Part shown: positions 1 through 62,660 of the stretch, one piece after another | How positions within the stretch are numbered: position 1 is the stretch's first letter | Layout: every line of letters begins with the position of its first letter | Translations under genes and position numbers: made by a program | The notes under the pieces: model-generated | Databases searched by the model: none | What the model was told of the DNA's origin: nothing | What the model saw: only the letters and a program-made list of their open reading frames with translations | Sequence record: ON287375.1 | Length of the DNA stretch: 64,000 nucleotides | Strand: one strand, 5' to 3'

Positions 1-65
1 ACATAACAAACATAACCCCTACCCACTCCTTAATTGGAGGGGTAGGGAGTGTATGAATAAATTTT

Positions 66-2551: not shown

Positions 2552-3973
2552 ATGAACATTGTCTACTATATCGTAAGTTCTTTTATCAAAGATAAAAATG
2601 TCGGACTATCTGGCGGTCATGGCTATTCTTACGATCCCGGTAACGAGAGTAAACGTAAGTTACAGAAAGACGTACCATCAGTTTATGGATACTACGTTAA
2701 TGGTAACTATCAAAATATCGCAGTGGATCAGATCGATATTTATAACGGTCGTATCCTGAAGCAACCAAATGAAGTAGATGCCTACCTGACCCATCTTGAA
2801 CTGATCATTAATAAATGGTTAGAAGATAAGAAGGAAGGTAATAAACTCCTTGTGATTGGTAACTGTGTCAAAGCGCACAAGATGCTTGAGAAAAACAAGT
2901 GTCCCGAAGCTTATAATGCTGAGCTGTTTAATCGTGTTTACGCTTTGATGCAAGAACATAAGAAAGATATCATTCACGATATTGAGTATTATGCTAAAGG
3001 TGGTGAAGGCCCTAAGACAGCTCATAAACAACTTGAGCTGGCTGAAGCCTTAGCTGATCTTCCTAATCCAGATACTATTACTCTTGATAAAATGGATGTT
3101 AAAGAGTATAAGAATCCAGAGATTGATTTTAATAAACTGGTTACAGCAACACGCTGGTATTTTAACACCGGTGATAAATCAACTTTCTATGATCTTGATG
3201 AAGAAGGTTATCGCCACTACACCTTTGGTCGTGTTGACCCAGATAAAAACTATTACGGTAAGGCTACGCCGGATGTGTTCTATTCTGCCTTGTACACGAA
3301 AACACCAATTAAGGTTTTGGATAAGTTATTCTCATTCTGTCAAAAGAACAGACCTAACCCATATAACATCATGGCGGCGGGCAACCTGAACCATATCAAG
3401 TCTAAGGAAATCGCTCGTGTTATCGATACGATCCCTGGGACGTTTGGTAAGAAGGAATTGGTTGCTCCAATGACGTTAGGTAATAACGAAGGTGCAAATC
3501 TGGTAGAGTTTATTGATCCACCTGGTCTGTCCTATCGTATCCGTGACTTCCATGCTAAGCTTGCTGCCATCTTCCGTTTTTGGAGAAAGCGTGATGCTAA
3601 TGGATGTTATCAGAAACATAAGTTTGTTGATATCACGGAACTGTTCTTTGTTAAAGATCCGAAAGGTAAATGGAAAATCCATCCGGACTTTACTAACAAC
3701 ACTTTGAAAATGCCGGTGACTATTGAAGCACCTGGTTGCGTTAAACCAGTTACGATCAATCTGAGTATGAAGTTTGATACTCCTGAACGTAATGCTTTAA
3801 ACAGTTTGATTGTAAATAAAGTGGAAGATATTAAAGTCTTCCTGGCTTTGGATTTCTCAGATGACTCTGGTGTGAGTTATTGCACCATTGTTAATACCCC
3901 TGAGTTTGATTACATTCATTCTAATAGCATCGCTAACCTACGGGTTTACAGTTTGAAAGAACTGGGCAAATAA
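2552..3973 (+). CDS. RNase H-like protein (phiKZ gp155-like), active site apparently degenerate
   Basis: 473 aa; N-terminal GGHGYSY pattern and position upstream of UvsX; canonical DG/E/D residues not seen. Confidence 0.5.
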   Translation: MNIVYYIVSSFIKDKNVGLSGGHGYSYDPGNESKRKLQKDVPSVYGYYVNGNYQNIAVDQIDIYNGRILKQPNEVDAYLTHLELIINKWLEDKKEGNKLLVIGNCVKAHKMLEKNKCPEAYNAELFNRVYALMQEHKKDIIHDIEYYAKGGEGPKTAHKQLELAEALADLPNPDTITLDKMDVKEYKNPEIDFNKLVTATRWYFNTGDKSTFYDLDEEGYRHYTFGRVDPDKNYYGKATPDVFYSALYTKTPIKVLDKLFSFCQKNRPNPYNIMAAGNLNHIKSKEIARVIDTIPGTFGKKELVAPMTLGNNEGANLVEFIDPPGLSYRIRDFHAKLAAIFRFWRKRDANGCYQKHKFVDITELFFVKDPKGKWKIHPDFTNNTLKMPVTIEAPGCVKPVTINLSMKFDTPERNALNSLIVNKVEDIKVFLALDFSDDSGVSYCTIVNTPEFDYIHSNSIANLRVYSLKELGK

Positions 3974-3977
3974 AAAG

Positions 3978-4020
3978 CATACTCCCTTACCCCTCCGCAA
4001 GGAAGGGTAAGGGTTATATG
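3978..4020. terminator. Repeated palindromic hairpin, likely bidirectional terminator
   Basis: catactcccttacccctccgcaaggaagggtaagggttatatg between convergent genes; identical copy at 8342-8384. Confidence 0.75.
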
Positions 4021-4025
4021 TTTCT

Positions 4026-5090
4026 TTAGTCCATGAAGGTGTCATTTAACTGACGAAGGTAAGTAGCAGCATCTTCAGATACTTCTTCTTTAGCCAGTTT
4101 AATTGCTTCTTTAACAATCGCCTTACTGGTTTTCTTTTCACCAATCTGGAGTTGAGAATCCAAAGTGATGACAGCATCACGATAACGAGCAGCAATAGAA
4201 CTCAATTCCTTCACTATAGAAACAGCACGGGATAAGCTACGACGTTTACCTTCATCGGTAGTGTCTTTATCAGCTTCATTCATTTTATCCAGAGCTACTG
4301 TTGCAGAAGCCAGAACGGATTGAACATCACCGGCGGCATCGATTAGATCACGAGTCACTATAGTAAGCTGACTAATTTTAGTTCCAGTAAACCCAGCATC
4401 CAGTCTGGTCAGTTTAGCAGCTTTCTCAAGAGCCTCAGTGGACGTATTCAGAGCCTTTAATGTTTCACCATTTGGATCAATACGTTTGATCTCTTTAATA
4501 TGACCATCAATACCAGCTAATTGGCGTTTAACAGTCCCGGCAATACGTTCCATAGTCTCACTCTGAATTTCTTCATGGCGAGCCTCTGCTTCATCACTAA
4601 GGGCTACTTCCTTGATCTTCTGGTTAATGATGACTTTATCGGCACTAGATAACCGTCTAATGATCCGAATTACTTCATGGTTAGAACCATCAGTGGCTAA
4701 ACCATCAATACCCTTAGTGGCAAGTTTCTTAACTTGTCTATTAACAACGTCACCTTCTAAAGATTTCTTAACTTTAGTGAACTCTCTAGCCGTTGCGCCG
4801 TTGATCCAATCTTTAATAGCACGCAGTAAGTTCTTGATCCATTCATAAACTTTCTGGCTACCTTTCTTTACACTGTCAAGGAAACCTTCCTGACCTTCAA
4901 CTTCAATCAGATCGATATCGTGAAGTTTAAGAACAGTGTCTGCGTATACAGCATCACCGCTTAGTTCGTTATCACCAACTTGTTCTTTAGCTAATTCAGC
5001 CAGACCATTAGTGATTGCACAAGTGTGTTCAAATTCTGAGTTAAGAGACTCAAAACCTGTAATATCTTTCAGTTCCATTTTGTTTACCAT
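4026..5090 (-). CDS. Putative internal head protein with protease-processed N-terminus
   Basis: 354 aa, helical; TGFE|SL and EGQE|GFLDSVKK...WIKNLL resemble phiKZ-like head-protein propeptide junctions. Confidence 0.55.
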   Translation of the reverse strand: MVNKMELKDITGFESLNSEFEHTCAITNGLAELAKEQVGDNELSGDAVYADTVLKLHDIDLIEVEGQEGFLDSVKKGSQKVYEWIKNLLRAIKDWINGATAREFTKVKKSLEGDVVNRQVKKLATKGIDGLATDGSNHEVIRIIRRLSSADKVIINQKIKEVALSDEAEARHEEIQSETMERIAGTVKRQLAGIDGHIKEIKRIDPNGETLKALNTSTEALEKAAKLTRLDAGFTGTKISQLTIVTRDLIDAAGDVQSVLASATVALDKMNEADKDTTDEGKRRSLSRAVSIVKELSSIAARYRDAVITLDSQLQIGEKKTSKAIVKEAIKLAKEEVSEDAATYLRQLNDTFMD

Positions 5091-15857: not shown

Positions 15858-15899
15858 CATAACCCTTACCCCTCCTCACGGAGTGGGTAAGGGAATATG
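15858..15899. terminator. Member of the repeated palindrome family
   Basis: cataacccttacccctcc-tcac-ggagtgggtaagggaatatg between convergent genes. Confidence 0.7.
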
Positions 15900-45624: not shown

Positions 45625-45668
45625 CATAAAACCCCTACCCCTCCTTTCGGAGTGGGTAGGGGATAATA
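45625..45668. terminator. Member of the repeated palindrome family
   Basis: cccctacccctcc-tttc-ggagtgggtagggg between convergent genes. Confidence 0.7.
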
Positions 45669-56732: not shown

Positions 56733-56817
56733 TTGATAAACTACCCCTCTAATTTTTGAAAGCCCGCATAGGCCCTTGCAGGCACTCTAATACAAAGTAT
56801 TACGATAAACAACAAAG

Positions 56818-56852
56818 ACCCCTACCCACCCCAGTTAAGGAGTGAGTAGGAA
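56818..56852 (-). terminator. Degenerate member of the repeated palindrome family
   Basis: cctacccacccc-agttaa-ggagtgagtagg downstream of tmk. Confidence 0.5.
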
Positions 56853-57490: not shown

Positions 57491-58956
57491 TACCGGTATG
57501 ACTCCATAGTTAAGGTTCTTAAAACAATATACAACATTAAAGAGGTTCTGAGAGAAGTGATCTTGATATCAGTTTTGATACCCGTCATCGCTTTAACTAA
57601 CTCATCACCATTTTTTCTCAATTTGAATAACAGAGCATTTGTGGACTTACTTGAAGTATAAGCACCACGGATCTTGAAGAACACATTCTTCAGGTCATTA
57701 TGCCGAATAGAGTTGGTCGCTAAATACTCAAACAAGTGAGTGGTGACATCATCAACAAACTCACGATATTGTTCTCCCTTCGGATGAGAATACTGAGCTG
57801 GGAAATCACGGATGATCATTTCCAACTTATCTTCATCAGTACGAGGGATTGCTTTAGCTGCATAAGTTGCGAGTTCCTGTTTAAAGAAACTGTTCTTATC
57901 CACCAGTACGGTACCGATATAGTTCTTATAACGGTTAACCTGTTTCTGAACATCTTTAATGTTCAGCTCTCCATCCAGTACAGCAAGACCTGAGTCTGTC
58001 TCTACTAAATCAACTGAGTCTTTAATTTCATACAGAACCTTAGTGTAGTCATTGATGACACCCTTAAGACGGGATTCCATGTCATTGACCATATATACTA
58101 TTTTCTTATCATTATCCATCTTAGCAAAGGCATCGAAGTGAATACCTGTACGAGGGTCGATAATGAACTCACCACGAGCACGGAAGAGATCAGTCCATGA
58201 ACCATAGCGCTTAATATCAAACTTCAAGGAGAGCTTGTTATAGGCTGTTACAGCAACACTCGGTTTCACCAGATAACCGAAGTAGTGGTTCATGATCGAA
58301 GTCATAATGCGGTAGTGGAACAACATTACTAAATTGATCAGCGCATCTTCTTTCAAGTTTCTAGGGAGACTTGAAATTTGAACACGGTGCATCAGATAAA
58401 CGATCGACAAGTTAAAAGCTTCAGAAGAAACTTTAAAGTCTTTGTTGATCCATTTGGTTTTAATCAATTCATCACGGAGTCTTACTTCATCAACATCAAT
58501 AATGTCACGGAAGAAAGTCACGCGGTCAGAAGTTTTAAACAAGATACGGTGAGTACCTAAGTAAGGAGAACCGAAGAACTCTGTATGATCATTGTCTTTG
58601 GTAGCAAACCCATAAACATATCTTTTCAGGTTTCTTGTCCAGCGTTCATTAATTACCAGGTCATCAACTAATGCATCAAAGATATCTTTAACTGCATCAT
58701 CACGATCATAGTTAAAGTTAGGCTGTAAGGCTTCAAAGCCAGCCATGTACTCTGCATTATTCAGATAGGACTCAAACCCACCAAACTGATTTAGAGCGAC
58801 TTCAGGACCAAACAGGGTGAATGGTTGATCCCGTTGTTCTAAACCTGCTAGTAAGGCTCTCAGCTCGTTATCTGATAATGATTCTTCCATACGGTCTTCT
58901 TCAGACTGTGGAATATAACTTTGCCTAATTGAATAGGCTGCATTGGAGAGATTCAT
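57490..58956 (-). CDS. Conserved virion protein (phiKZ gp32-like)
   Basis: 488 aa; GFE motifs in the N-terminus; synteny. Confidence 0.6.
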   Translation of the reverse strand: MNLSNAAYSIRQSYIPQSEEDRMEESLSDNELRALLAGLEQRDQPFTLFGPEVALNQFGGFESYLNNAEYMAGFEALQPNFNYDRDDAVKDIFDALVDDLVINERWTRNLKRYVYGFATKDNDHTEFFGSPYLGTHRILFKTSDRVTFFRDIIDVDEVRLRDELIKTKWINKDFKVSSEAFNLSIVYLMHRVQISSLPRNLKEDALINLVMLFHYRIMTSIMNHYFGYLVKPSVAVTAYNKLSLKFDIKRYGSWTDLFRARGEFIIDPRTGIHFDAFAKMDNDKKIVYMVNDMESRLKGVINDYTKVLYEIKDSVDLVETDSGLAVLDGELNIKDVQKQVNRYKNYIGTVLVDKNSFFKQELATYAAKAIPRTDEDKLEMIIRDFPAQYSHPKGEQYREFVDDVTTHLFEYLATNSIRHNDLKNVFFKIRGAYTSSKSTNALLFKLRKNGDELVKAMTGIKTDIKITSLRTSLMLYIVLRTLTMESYR

Positions 58957-59801
58957 TAACGTTTCCTTGGGACTGTCATCTTAATTGCATCAGACTTACC
59001 TTTCGGATCAGCATAAGCAAGATATTTCTTAATCTCATTATTATACAGATCTTTGAACTCACGGTGAGCATCGGCATAACCTTGGATATCATCCTGAACA
59101 TCTTCAACAGTTACACCGAAACGTGAAACTGCTTCTTGCATACCACGACGACATGTCTTATAGATATAAGCTTTAACACCAAGTTCTACTAGCTCGGCAA
59201 ACTTGTCATACATTCTTGCAGGTATAACGCTGAAGTGTTCGTCATAAGACAGAATAACTTTAGCGATCATATTAAACATCGCAGAACCAGCGTCACGGAT
59301 AATAAAGGAGTTATTACCTGTCATGGTGAAGCTAGTAAAGGAACGTTGAACCTGACCATCGTCCAAACCGTTAATTAAGCGGTTAAGACTATTGTTCATC
59401 ATACCAGAACCACAAGCTGCATAGTTATTAAAGTTATAACCATTGTTGATAGCTCGGTTGATGTTACCTGGGTAAACTTCCAAGACAGAAAGAATACGAC
59501 GACCACCTGTCATGAAGTCAGGAACGTTAACTGCGATGATACCACCGGAAAGGTTTTCAATATGTGCTGCGCTAAGATCGATGATCTCCGTAGTACCGCC
59601 AGCCACATTAAGTAAAGGACCAACCATTTTCATGATGACCTTTTCACGAATACCTTGTTCTACAGTAAACTCGTCATTCACTGGAGCCCAGATACTTCCA
59701 TAACCGTTATTTGGATTATGGAAGGCTAGCTTCAATAAATATTCAGAGATGTCGGTAGGACCATTGATCACATACTCAACACTAAAATCAACTGGATTCA
59801 C
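58956..59801 (-). CDS. Conserved phiKZ-like protein (gp33-like position)
   Basis: 281 aa, GTG start after GGAGG. Confidence 0.65.
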   Translation of the reverse strand: MNPVDFSVEYVINGPTDISEYLLKLAFHNPNNGYGSIWAPVNDEFTVEQGIREKVIMKMVGPLLNVAGGTTEIIDLSAAHIENLSGGIIAVNVPDFMTGGRRILSVLEVYPGNINRAINNGYNFNNYAACGSGMMNNSLNRLINGLDDGQVQRSFTSFTMTGNNSFIIRDAGSAMFNMIAKVILSYDEHFSVIPARMYDKFAELVELGVKAYIYKTCRRGMQEAVSRFGVTVEDVQDDIQGYADAHREFKDLYNNEIKKYLAYADPKGKSDAIKMTVPRKR

Positions 59802-59924
59802 TTGAACCCTCCTAAATACTATTTCGAAATAGACCTTTATAGAAAGGCAATGATCTCACTATCCAACCATCCTAGGTTTGTTAATAGAGAGAAGACGTCA
59901 TATGATTTAAAACTAAAAGACAAA

Positions 59925-59969
59925 CATAAACCCCTACCCCAACCTTTCGGAAGGGGTAGGGAGTAAATG
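59925..59969 (-). terminator. Member of the repeated palindrome family, closing the RNA operon
   Basis: cccctacccc...ggggtaggg hairpin. Confidence 0.65.
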
Positions 59970-59974
59970 CTTAG

Positions 59975-60901
59975 TTACATGGACACTCGAAAGAGCAATC
60001 AATAATCTCAGGGTTGCAAATCCCTTCATATTACAATCACTCAGACGGCTGTCTACGGTTGATGTCAACAACTTTCCCCTGGCATGGAGACGGACCGTTT
60101 GCGTCTGGCTTGGTACGCTATAATGCCATATAGTTACCTTCCAGTTAAAGCGCTGTTGTCTCACCCTTGAACATCGGGTGGCTGCTCACGGTTAGGGCAC
60201 AGCTGTTCTATGACGGTTCCAATGGTGCTGGAGACACCTTATTGGATACCCGTTTCGTCTACTTGTTTTATGTCGTCAGACTCGTCAGATAGTACGACAA
60301 CCCTCACCAAAGGGATTAGGGTGGTCCTCTGATATCGCATGAGTAATCTCATTACTCTCCCAGGTTATTTGAACATCAATGTTCAACCTTAAGTTATGCT
60401 TTCGTTCAGAAGGACCGATGGGTGTGTCTCCGTATCATCAACTCTCAAGCTCATCACATTTATGCATATATAGCTAGGGTTTGTTCGATACCAAGACACA
60501 TATGGGTACAGCGTTCCCAGTTAAGATAGATATTGTTTTTTATGACCGCCCAGGATGGAGTTCGGGTTCTACCATCATCGATAATCCAATAGTCACGTAT
60601 CGGAAGTGCATTCAGCTTATGCTACTGGGCATTCTATCAAACGCGCTGCTATGTCGCCGAGGCTTAACCAGGACAACACCCACCAAGAGCTACTTACAAT
60701 AGCGGACTCTCGCCGCCGTTCACTCTTGGATTTAAACCTGGCATACTAGCCAGGTATTGCCTCTGTACTTGTCTGCCCAGTAGGGCCGAACTTACAGAGG
60801 TCTTACATCCCAATACCGTTGACTGGCAAACCCCTTCCAACCCCGAATCAATCGGCTCATTGGACCAGACTTACACTTCCCAACTTAACTGGGTTACTAC
60901 A
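59975..60901 (-). ncRNA. Candidate large ornate non-coding RNA (~925 nt), family unassigned
   Basis: No credible ORF; >12 helices including two 10-bp long-range pairings; starts right after tRNA-Ile CCA and ends at a hairpin. Confidence 0.65.
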
Positions 60902-60978
60902 TGGTGGCCCTGACAGGACTTGAACCTGTGACCAGGCGATTATGAGTCACTTGCTCTAACCAACTGAGCTACAGGGCC
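60902..60978 (-). tRNA. tRNA-Ile2(CAU), or Met
   Basis: GGCCCTGTAGCTCAGTTGGTTAGAGC...CTCATAA...GGTTCAAGTCC...GGGCCACCA; closely resembles enterobacterial ileX. Confidence 0.92.
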
Positions 60979-60984
60979 GCACTA

Positions 60985-61251
60985 TCAAGCTTCTTTTTGA
61001 GGAAGACTTGCTTTGTGTTTAGCAACAACTGGCATCAGACCTTGGAAGCCATGTGGATTATATTTACCATCCACAAACACTTGAGGAACTGAAGTTACAG
61101 TCTGACCACAGATTTCACTAAGCTTAGGGGCATCGATCCCAACTTGAGTAATGTCGATGCATTCATGTTCAATACCTTCAACATCTTTAACCAGGTTCTT
61201 AGCGCGATCACACCATGGGCAATTCGGTTTGCCATAGATTACAACTTTCAT
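60985..61251 (-). CDS. Glutaredoxin
   Basis: YGKPNCPWC active site; TVTSVPQVFVDG. Confidence 0.92.
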   Translation of the reverse strand: MKVVIYGKPNCPWCDRAKNLVKDVEGIEHECIDITQVGIDAPKLSEICGQTVTSVPQVFVDGKYNPHGFQGLMPVVAKHKASLPQKEA

Positions 61252-61760: not shown

Positions 61761-61907
61761 TTGGGTGGGAGTCACTAGCTCCCAGGTCAGACAATGTCCA
61801 ACTGTAACTCGGTTTGATTACCTCGCGGTAACCCTGCTCTGGCATCACATGGGTCTCACCCATTATCCCCCAGACTTGGCCTACGATGGCTCCTTTGGCG
61901 CACCCAA
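61761..61907 (-). ncRNA. Candidate structured small RNA (~147 nt)
   Basis: TTGGGTG/CACCCAA closing stem; TTACC-GCGA-GGTAA and ATGGG-TGAGA-CCCAT hairpins. Confidence 0.5.
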
Positions 61908-61969
61908 CCCGAAACGCTCGCTCAAAGACTTATCGTAATAAAGCTTTAAGCAAATGTTTAAAGAAAACA

Positions 61970-62095
61970 CCCCACTTCGACATTTAAGTCAGTACTGATT
62001 CTTACTTGTAATTCAACAATCCGTTTCGGCTTACCTGACACCTTGGTCAATGTAACGCCCGGTTCGTATCTATTACGTTGGGAAGGACAGTGGGG
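61970..62095 (-). ncRNA. Candidate structured small RNA (~126 nt)
   Basis: CCCCACT/AGTGGGG closing stem; several short internal hairpins. Confidence 0.4.
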
Positions 62096-62447
62096 ATAAT
62101 TGTTTTTTGTCTGCGATAACTTAGATCCTGCTCAACTGGATCTCTTCTCCCTGAGGCTGAGAGCACTATTTAAGATTAACGCTTAGTATAACGAAGTATA
62201 TCTAAAAAGCCGAACTTAATCGGTAGTTGTTGAGTATCGTAGAGGGACTCGTTTCCAAATTGTGGTCCTGCCATTATACTACACTAGTTAGGCTGGAACA
62301 TGTAATCGCTAGTGAAGTTCCTATTCGCTGCAACGCGGCCCTAGGAAGGGAATTGGCGAACCGACTGATCCAGGTGAATGACCATGGCGTAATCATTCCT
62401 TTTGTTATCAGCCGGCTCTTGTTCTTAACAGAATATAGTAAACTCTG

Positions 62448-62660
62448 TTAATTAAATACTTTTGGTGGGACTATGGTATTTGGTCTTGGTCTGTATTTCA
62501 TCATGGTTTTGTTAATTCCTTCTTCCCCATGATTGTTCCAGATCTTGATGATTTCCTTTTCATCTAAATGATTCATCAGGAACTTGACCTTTCTCAATAC
62601 CGCATTGGTCCATAGCTTAGACTTGTTCTTAGCAGACCACCATGTTTTAAAGCTCAGCAA
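62448..62660 (-). CDS. Possible small hypothetical protein; start uncertain
   Basis: Open frame ...KNKSKLWTNAVLRKVKFLMNH...; no clear ATG. Confidence 0.3.
   Translation of the reverse strand: MLSFKTWWSAKNKSKLWTNAVLRKVKFLMNHLDEKEIIKIWNNHGEEGINKTMMKYRPRPNTIVPPKVFN

Follow-up and report, generated by a model that had tools for sequence, protein, structure and literature searches.

The Serratia jumbo phage vB_SmaM-Yubaba (ON287375.1, 255.7 kb, genus Petsuvirus) belongs to the OBP/pEt-SU-like clade and is phiKZ-related. In a stretch of 64,000 nucleotides of its genome (the window; record position equals window position plus 124000), the minus strand between a tRNA gene and a virion-protein gene carries a region free of open reading frames (ORFs), 59915-60901, that is genuine, non-coding and conserved. 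The locus is best described as two independent RNA modules, which we call RNA-A and RNA-B, separated when adjacent by a predicted type I hammerhead ribozyme, because the hammerhead predicts cleavage and because the parts occur separately in other phages. For the same reasons the single continuous RNA of ~925 nt proposed in an initial annotation, made from the sequence alone, is not supported. With moderate confidence, we read the modules as stable, highly structured non-coding RNAs (ncRNAs) linked to a tRNA operon, released from one transcript by the built-in ribozyme and most likely acting in trans as structural RNAs.

A conserved non-coding locus downstream of a tRNA

The 1081 bases around the locus are 100% identical to vB_SmaM-Yubaba, and the locus is 99.9% identical to that of phage Sureiya. 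It spans ~950 nt overall and follows, on the same strand, a tRNA with the anticodon CAU (60902-60978, minus strand; detected by ARAGORN, and with 67 bits by the Rfam tRNA model) that is part of a cluster of four tRNAs; the region begins immediately after the CCA of this tRNA, as the initial annotation had it. This gene is labelled tRNA-Met(CAT) by ARAGORN and in GenBank. Its best matches among 5426 Escherichia coli genomes are genes annotated as tRNA-Ile (88% identity); therefore it is most likely a lysidine-type tRNA-Ile2(CAU), and the name tRNA-Ile given to it initially was right despite the label. A tRNA-Ile2 is likely labelled as tRNA-Met also in N1M2, OBP and many other phage records. The RNA directly follows this tRNA also in N1M2 and in the metagenome contig VFSW01420984, and no sigma-70 promoter recognisable above background was found for the locus.

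The absence of a credible ORF was confirmed, given that none longer than 76 amino acids exists on either strand of 59934-60901. The substitutions relative to the homologues show no sign of codon periodicity and are spread evenly over the three codon positions, and only ~4-30% of the insertions and deletions, depending on the homologue compared, have a length divisible by three. The GC content of the locus is 0.43-0.51 versus 0.37-0.42 in the flanking genes, in agreement with the elevated value noticed before, and the preference for the minus strand was borne out by folding of the 690-nt RNA (-232 kcal/mol, z -4.0, versus -199 kcal/mol, z -2.5, for the complement). Two annotated hypothetical proteins overlap or are antisense to the conserved RNA, i.e. 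N1M2_252 (plus strand, 3517-4029 of the N1M2 stretch analysed) and QYN80068.1 of Kc263 (2948-3139 of the Kc263 stretch analysed); neither has a conserved equivalent in other phages, and both are probably false ORF calls. Several GenBank records thus carry spurious ORFs across the RNA locus in addition to the mislabelled tRNA-Ile2.

A homologous non-coding segment is present at the same position in Yubaba/Sureiya, in Klebsiella phage N1M2 (90% identity), Kosakonia phage Kc263, Pseudomonas phage OBP, Edwardsiella phage pEt-SU, Pantoea phage Survivor, Shewanella phage SXP01 and Erwinia phage AH04, as well as in four IMG/VR genomes (260-271 kb) and one metagenome contig, about 13 relatives in all. 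Upstream of the segment there is a tRNA/glutaredoxin cluster, and downstream of it come two virion-protein genes and the genes for thymidylate kinase and terminase. A scan of IMG/VR with the hammerhead pattern described below yielded the four new genomes and one unrelated hammerhead, and a metagenome scan yielded the one new contig. The unrelated hammerhead is compact and canonical (stem I UUUCG/CGAAA) and lies at 1012-1098 of a different viral contig, IMGVR_UViG_3300028914_000101 (56 kb). Protein-anchored scans of IMG/VR gave no further relatives. A scan of GTDB with one genome per bacterial species gave a chance match only; therefore, as far as these searches reach, the element seems to be confined to this phage lineage.

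Rfam was searched at gathering thresholds with the whole window, and with permissive filters and E<=10 with the 1.3 kb of 59800-61100. No family matched RNA-A or RNA-B; apart from the tRNAs there were only chance matches, namely L10_leader (26 bits, on the terminator), YrlA, and tmRNA_permuted (11.8 bits, overlapping the tRNA), and ARAGORN found no tmRNA. The covariance-model check that had been proposed for this region consequently gave no GOLLD, ROOL, RNase P, group I or II intron or tmRNA family match, and the statement that the RNA could be assigned neither to GOLLD nor to ROOL holds at E<=10. Full-text literature searches returned no description of this RNA and nothing relevant on hammerheads or structured RNAs in jumbo phages, whether OBP, Yubaba or others.

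The structures reported here were derived from MAFFT alignments of sub-regions together with RNAalifold, independent folds of single sequences and one covariance model, and were tested by comparing the share of paired alignment cells with 500 shuffles and with slid controls. Selection on structure is seen in every domain: for the hammerhead, for domain 2, the four-way junction and the three-way junction of RNA-A, and for RNA-B, the observed pairing and covariation were reached by 0 of 500 shuffles and were above all slid controls. Covariation among homologues, the lack of which the initial annotation had named as grounds for abandoning the RNA, is abundant. What had been proposed as a large and ornate non-coding RNA locus on the minus strand, joined to the tRNA cluster, is supported.

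A predicted type I hammerhead ribozyme between the two modules

The first alignment showed three blocks, CUGANGAGUC, GACGAAACGGG and CCGUC, that are invariant in every member. The segment 60208-60299 (minus strand, as all the RNA features below) contains a complete predicted type I hammerhead ribozyme with an invariant core, covarying stems and a covarying pseudoknot. Stem I is formed by CUAU (60289-60292) and AUAG (60208-60211), and its 4 pairs all covary (CUAU/AUAG, CAG/CUG, ACAU/AUGU, CACC/GGUG). The core sequence CUGACGA (60282-60288) is followed by stem II (60278-60281/60257-60260; 96% paired, the fourth pair being U-A or C-G), the trinucleotide GAA (60254-60256), and stem III (60250-60253/60213-60216), whose proximal 4 bp are invariant and whose distal hairpin (60219-60245) covaries. 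In hammerhead numbering, C3-A9 precede stem II (G10.1-C11.1), G12, A13 and A14 precede stem III (A15.1-U16.1), and C17, the cleavage nucleotide, is followed by the 3' strand of stem I. C3-A9, G12-A14, A15.1-U16.1 and C17 are invariant in 12 sequences, with the motif CUGA(C/U/A)GA, GAA and GUC. The assignment to type I is made because stem I is open.

A pseudoknot of 6 bp (UGUCGU/ACGACA, 60294-60299/60271-60276) connects loop II with the bases that directly precede stem I; 97% of its alignment cells are paired, and both sides have changed in four of the six pairs. Pseudoknots of this kind are the usual means by which natural hammerheads keep stems I and II parallel (PMC3088659). In the alignment of 12 sequences, 86% of the cells assigned to hammerhead pairs are paired, versus 74% in shuffled alignments and 24-48% in the slid controls. 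Two helices of the initial annotation, 60294-60299/60271-60276 and 60219-60245, are kept in the homologues; they are the pseudoknot and the distal part of stem III, so that the helices were correct and the ribozyme they belong to was missed.

By its predicted structure, the element has the core, the three stems and the tertiary contact of the class, and fails on its Rfam score. The failure is probably due to an unusually long loop II (16-23 nt) and stem III (~45 nt), and divergent hammerheads that score below all six Rfam thresholds have been documented. We regard it as a probable new hammerhead variant. The H17 position relative to the core and stems places the predicted cleavage site at GUC|A (60211-60212), so that the RNA should be cut after C60212. 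Cleavage there would leave a 2',3'-cyclic phosphate on C60212, the last nucleotide of the 5' product, and a 5'-OH on A60211, the first nucleotide of the 3' product, a chemistry that we infer from the known hammerhead mechanism (PMC3088659).

Architecture of RNA-A

RNA-A (~60300-60893 plus the hammerhead) is a 5' RNA of ~690 nt that consists of a chain of domains, on which sub-region alignments, RNAalifold and independent folds agree. Domain 1 (60818-60884) is a long hairpin closed by GUUGG/UCAAC; its conservation starts at GUUGGGAAGUGUA, its topology is the same in the fold of every homologue, and the closing helix covaries (GUUG/CAAC, GUCG/CGAC, GUCA/UGAC). The alignments place UGUAAGACC (60799-60807) as the link to domain 2; within it the 8 bases GUAAGACC are invariant in 12 of 12 homologues, and the U that precedes them is kept in most. 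Domain 2 (60683-60800), for which the independent folds gave the same topology in 12/12 homologues, is formed by a first hairpin, CCUCUGUA/UACAGAGG, that includes an inner hairpin, a second hairpin ACCUGGC/GCCAGGU, and the helix CCAAGAG/CUCUUGG surrounding the hairpin GGCGG-CGAGAGU-CCGCU. RNAalifold assigns it 24 pairs, 15 of them with compensatory changes.

Domain 3 (60504-60681) is a four-way junction recognised by covariation and by the shuffling test (92% of cells paired versus 82% shuffled and 32-46% in the slid controls; 19 of 40 pairs changed on both sides, a number that 0 of 500 shuffles reach). It is closed by GGGU (60678-60681)/ACCC (60504-60507) and GCAGCG (60644-60649)/CGCUGU (60508-60513). 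A local hairpin UGGG...CCCA at 60504-60520 was also considered and was replaced by these long-range pairs, which covary as GGGU/ACCC and GCARCG/CGYUGU. The interior contains the junction helix CCCAG/CUGGG, the hairpin GCAU-AAGCUGA-AUGC (60608-60622), a hairpin at 60586-60603, and the hairpin GAUGG-UAGAACCCGAACU-CCAUC (60554-60576), whose 13-nt loop is near-invariant, as is the AAGCUGA loop. Two relatives, IMGVR_UViG_3300045943 and IMGVR_UViG_2030936005, are without this whole sub-domain and keep the remainder.

A variable linker (60417-60503) that folds as one long hairpin in all homologues, with a length of 69-153 nt and a sequence that differs in each lineage, leads to domain 4 (60323-60416), a three-way junction closed by an 11-bp helix, GGUCCUUCUGA/UCAGAGGACC, with compensatory changes at 7 of 10 pairs. 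Its junction strands ACGAAAGC and GCGAUAUC are conserved, and its interior, with inner hairpins at 60362-60389 and 60341-60357, has the same topology in 12/12 homologues though the sequences differ. Directly 5' of the hammerhead there is a small hairpin, CCCU-UUGGUG-AGGG (60301-60314), with a conserved UGGUG loop and a covarying stem (CCCU/AGGG, CUACU/AGUAG, CUCUC/GAGAG).

Ten of the twelve helices initially proposed for the locus are kept in the homologues with compensatory changes, and two long-range ones fail. Besides the two that belong to the hammerhead, those that stand are 60793-60800/60760-60767, 60749-60755/60736-60742, 60723-60729/60683-60689, 60406-60416/60323-60332 and the hairpins 60362-60389 and 60341-60357 in RNA-A, and 60162-60180 and 60123-60128/60080-60085 in RNA-B. 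The pairing 60884-60893/60516-60525 is complete in Yubaba (10/10), reaches 8/10 in N1M2 and only 4-6/10 in other homologues, and no single helix closing a 5' domain of ~380 nt, the role attributed to it, was found. The pairing 60774-60783/60622-60631 is complete in Yubaba (10/10) and almost so in N1M2 (9/10), reaches 8/10 in Survivor and does not exceed 5/10 elsewhere. Its 3' strand (CCCAG) covaries instead with a downstream CUGGG (60549-60553): pEt-SU and the metagenome contig have CCUG/CAGG there, an IMG/VR genome has GGUCCCU/AGGGACC. Its 5' strand is part of a local hairpin in every homologue.

Architecture of RNA-B

RNA-B, the 3' module (59978-60211), has ~235 structured nucleotides (~295 nt including the terminator) and is common to eight or more members downstream of the predicted cleavage site. 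In its alignment 92% of the cells are paired versus 81% after shuffling, and 17 of 43 pairs have changed on both sides. It comprises a hairpin with the conserved loop GCCCUAACCGUGAG (60181-60203), a hairpin at 60162-60180, a hairpin with the loop UGGCAU (60123-60128), a core formed by CAAACGGUCCG, a hairpin and GAAAGUUGUU (60067-60101) that exposes the loop AUGCCA at 60080-60085, and a terminal multi-helix arm (59978-60056). The pairing 60123-60128/60080-60085 listed in the initial annotation is a covarying loop-loop kissing interaction, located 22-29 nt upstream of the core in the 12/12 sequences examined, and five versions of it were found (UGGCAU/AUGCCA, GGGCA/UGCCC, GUGUC/GACAC, GACGA/UCGUC, AGAGCA/UGCUCU). 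In addition, the 14-nt loop of the first hairpin (GCCYUAACNGUGAG) pairs through its AACNGU part with ACNGU of the core, forming a pseudoknot; its middle pair varies between C-G (six sequences), U-A (six) and A-U (one). An alternative pairing, AACGG/GUUGU, proposed by RNAalifold was discarded since the A-U variant of Aeromonas phage PS1 favours the pseudoknot with the hairpin-1 loop. In IMGVR_UViG_3300045943, an insertion of ~60 nt inside RNA-B causes the covariance model to give two split matches.

The two modules occur separately in related phages

In pEt-SU, Survivor and SXP01, RNA-A and the hammerhead are followed at once by the terminator, with no RNA-B at the locus, and blastn found no RNA-B elsewhere in these three genomes. 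The reverse arrangement occurs in the Aeromonas jumbo phages AhC3_1, PS1, D6 and AerS_266, whose neighbour protein is 65-72% identical to that of Yubaba: RNA-B occupies the equivalent location, preceded by tRNAs of which some are unannotated, and neither RNA-A nor the hammerhead was detected by nhmmer or motif searches. R1, a covariance model built from the Yubaba-like RNA-B sequences, matched AhC3_1 (34 bits, E 4e-6), PS1 (27 bits, E 2e-4) and D6 (17 bits, E 0.07, marginal alone); D6 keeps the signature pairs of RNA-B, and AerS_266, missed by R1, has them by inspection. EL, Miami and pTD1 have neither module, and no other ribozymes were found beside RNA-B in the Aeromonas phages at E<=0.5.

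In the Aeromonas phage intergenic stretches analysed, Rfam identified tRNA genes that are unannotated in GenBank at 2742-2824, 2544-2625, 2888-2965 and 1099-1172 of four separate stretches. In PS1, ~600 nt of unexplained non-coding sequence lie between such a tRNA and RNA-B; their size is about that of RNA-A, and no similarity was detectable.

The terminator and the neighbouring sequences

The transcription unit would end at a hairpin with the features of an intrinsic terminator, CCCUACCCC...GGGGUAGGGG followed by the U-run UUUAUGUUUG (59915-59963), which is kept in nearly all homologues. The initial annotation had noted that the RNA ends at a repeat hairpin, and the arm GGGGTAGGGGTTT indeed occurs five times on the minus strand of the window (13-25, 15860-15872, 45629-45641, 56816-56828 and 59928-59940), two of them being exact copies, versus 0.9 occurrences expected. 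The hairpin is a reused phage terminator that is conserved in related phages too.

The gene that follows (58956-59801, minus strand) encodes a virion protein of 281 amino acids with homologues in EL, PhiPA3 and many phiKZ-related jumbo phages, and for this reason the initial attribution to a phiKZ-like jumbo phage is correct in a broad sense. Between the terminator and the start codon of this gene, most relatives have a conserved (A/T)TCTTTTGTAA motif (GATCTTTTGTAAGCTTAC in Kc263), which is not present in Yubaba or N1M2; the motif is a candidate for a phage promoter that drives the structural operon.

A second ORF-free stretch of ~700 nt (61761-62460, minus strand) lies upstream of tRNA-Asn in the same tRNA operon. 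It has conserved blocks (74-87% identity in OBP, Kc263, SXP01 and Survivor, 91% in N1M2), and Rfam gives nothing for it at E<=5; in N1M2 an HNH endonuclease gene is its neighbour, and there is an insertion in Sureiya. It may be another structured RNA or an operon leader.

Proposed origin and role of the RNAs

We propose that transcription proceeds through tRNA-Ile2(CAU) into the locus. Co-transcription with the tRNAs is suggested by the common strand, by the lack of any gap after the CCA and by the lack of a sigma-70 promoter recognisable above background. The host machinery that processes tRNA 3' ends would then free the 5' end of RNA-A near 60901-60885, and the hammerhead, held by the pseudoknot between loop II and the 5' flank, would fold and cut. 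The expected products are an RNA-A of ~690 nt that includes the hammerhead and carries the cyclic phosphate, and an RNA-B that starts with the 5'-OH and would end at the intrinsic terminator. The predicted fold of each RNA comprises multi-way junctions, pseudoknots and kissing loops, and each is most likely a long-lived structural RNA that acts in trans during infection, either as RNA only or as a ribonucleoprotein. The role of the ribozyme would be restricted to processing, i.e. to give each module a defined, exonuclease-resistant end; such a role fits the modularity of the locus, since phages with RNA-A plus the hammerhead and phages with RNA-B only both exist.

Several observations weigh against this proposal. 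The sample consists of about 14 distinct sequences from a few related lineages, for which reason the shuffle controls are not true probabilities, and some of the covariation counts represent single evolutionary events. The best Rfam hammerhead match, Hammerhead_3, reaches 14 bits (threshold 48.5, E 1.5), covers only the core and has the wrong topology. OBP, Kc263, pEt-SU and the IMG/VR genomes have no tRNA directly upstream, therefore the 5' end of RNA-A must be made otherwise there. Finally, the suggested function in structural assembly is drawn by analogy from size, context and kissing loops. An all-against-all scan of column covariation was too noisy to identify further long-range pairs, since G/U-rich segments pair with everything.

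Other explanations of the locus were weighed against the same data. That it is not an RNA gene at all, and that a DNA-level element (a replication origin, a packaging site or a promoter array) or a decayed coding region shows helices by chance, would agree with its intergenic position, its atypical AT/GC composition and the short hypothetical ORFs annotated in N1M2 and Kc263; this is very improbable, since dozens of pairs are kept by double substitutions, including G-U pairs valid on the minus strand only, the full hammerhead core is invariant, and there is no codon periodicity, the indels break the frame and the annotated ORFs are not conserved between phages. A cis-regulatory leader, in which RNA-B or the whole region senses a signal and controls read-through of the terminator into the virion-protein operon (58956-59801 and downstream), is suggested by the pseudoknotted, aptamer-like core of RNA-B and by its invariable location directly upstream of the gene for the 281-aa protein, with the terminator between them, in the Yubaba-like and Aeromonas phages. 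We nevertheless find it unlikely. The terminator is a generic hairpin reused across the genome, and it is separated from the last helix of RNA-B by an unpaired spacer of ~14 nt; no overlap or anti-terminator pairing between them was seen, though the search was not exhaustive. Moreover, pEt-SU, Survivor and SXP01 keep the terminator and the gene without RNA-B, a U-rich UUUUGUAA motif conserved after the terminator in several homologues suggests that the gene has its own promoter, and 235-950 nt is far larger than known leaders.

Alternatively, RNA-A could itself be catalytic, either as a large ribozyme of a new kind or as the RNA subunit of an enzyme that processes, for example, tRNAs; the hammerhead would then serve only for its maturation. 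Its ~600 nt with several multi-way junctions, its invariant single strands (GUAAGACC, the UAGAACCCGAACU loop and the ACGAAAGC/GCGAUAUC junction) and its place in a tRNA operon would suit an enzyme, and by inspection the conserved loop sequence GAACCCG appears to be complementary to CGGGUUC, which resembles part of a T-arm. The probability of this explanation is nonetheless low, because no RNase P, group I or II intron or other Rfam ribozyme matched at E<=10 and because the loss of the four-way-junction sub-domain in two relatives that keep the rest is unusual for a catalytic core. Two segments, AGAACCCG and GGGAAGUGUAAGUC, resembled CR-V and CR-I of RNase P; this candidate was dropped, given that there was neither a model match nor a conserved P4-like pairing. 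The RNAs could also be anti-defence decoys, i.e. sponges or mimics that neutralise a host defence protein targeting RNA or tRNA. Counter-defence against anticodon nucleases has been associated with the tRNA islands of phages, and the modules are gained and lost among related phages with different hosts, as are accessory counter-defence genes. We consider a decoy improbable as well, because no mimicry of a known target (tRNA, CRISPR repeat or retron RNA) was found in sequence or structure, and the strong conservation from Pseudomonas to Serratia to Shewanella hosts argues for a core rather than a host-specific role.

Within the proposal of stable structural RNAs acting in trans, a more specific and tentative idea, which we judge possible and rather doubtful, is that RNA-A and RNA-B freed by the hammerhead assemble into RNA-only homo- or hetero-oligomers of a new class, or else that RNA-A is a new large ribozyme. 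Two features are compatible with intermolecular bridges, the covarying kissing loop in RNA-B and a conserved loop in RNA-A, AAGCUNA, with the self-complementary sequence AGCU inside it. In ROOL and GOLLD, covarying tertiary pairs proved to be intermolecular. If true, this would be the first class of ornate RNA in the nucleus-forming (phiKZ-related) jumbo phages of Gram-negative bacteria.

Comparative support for the family defined by this locus is strong, and its carriers include cultivated jumbo phages that grow on laboratory hosts (Serratia marcescens LVF3, Pseudomonas fluorescens, Klebsiella aerogenes, Erwinia), so that cryo-electron microscopy (cryo-EM), genetics and the mapping of transcripts are directly feasible. 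The distribution of genomes with A only, B only, or A, hammerhead and B offers natural experiments on function.

Comparison with known RNAs and ribozymes

To our knowledge, only a handful of very large ornate RNAs have been described in bacteria and phages (GOLLD, ROOL, OLE, raiA and HEARO). GOLLD forms a 14-mer nanocage according to cryo-EM (doi 10.1101/2024.12.08.627333). The Yubaba locus resembles it in having more than 800 nt in all, an ornate structure, a phage origin, a position in a tRNA island (one GOLLD is directly downstream of tRNA-Met), two domains of unequal conservation and covarying kissing loops. It differs from GOLLD in that there is no covariance-model match at E<=10, the helices and conserved sequences are others, the carriers are jumbo phages of Gammaproteobacteria, and a predicted self-cleaving ribozyme should part the two domains. 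ROOL, an octameric nanocage, is likewise a pseudoknotted RNA of ~600 nt; it occurs close to tRNA genes in phages and prophages, and no protein partner of it is known. RNA-A is similar in size, pseudoknotting and context, and it differs in that no model matched, the structure is unrelated, and ROOL has no ribozyme. Both GOLLD and ROOL are RNA-only cages whose intermolecular bridges were first seen as covarying tertiary pairs, and by analogy with them we think that RNA-A and RNA-B have a stable role in trans. Since no covariance model matched, yet the context and the scale are common with GOLLD and ROOL, RNA-A and RNA-B are, as judged from their predicted structures, a new family (or two) of the kind that may be called large ornate phage RNAs in tRNA islands. 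New for that kind would be a predicted, built-in self-cleaving ribozyme between separable modules, which has not been reported for it.

Stable RNAs other than tRNAs are also produced from the tRNA operon of phage T4, where species 1 and 2 (~120-140 nt) are co-transcribed with the cluster and released by host RNases; they are alike in their origin and differ in being small and having no built-in ribozyme. The layout of the Yubaba locus is that of engineered expression cassettes flanked by a tRNA and a ribozyme (e.g. for guide-RNA processing), in which the tRNA sets one end and the hammerhead the other; here the arrangement is natural, and by analogy it may work in the same way.

The ribozyme itself is closest to the type I hammerheads with a pseudoknot between stem I and stem II (Perreault et al. 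2011, PMC3088659), with which it has in common the core CUGANGA...GAAA...UH, the canonical order of three stems, the G10.1-C11.1 and A15.1-U16.1 pairs, the GUC cleavage site, the paired contact between loop II and the flank of stem I, and the phage context. It differs from them in its long loop II (16-23 nt), in the stem III hairpin of ~45 nt, in a score below every Rfam threshold, and in being flanked on either side by a large structured RNA module instead of lying between mRNAs or within a repeat. The Yubaba locus would thus be a natural example of a hammerhead that parts two structured ncRNAs, which bears on what phage hammerheads are for.

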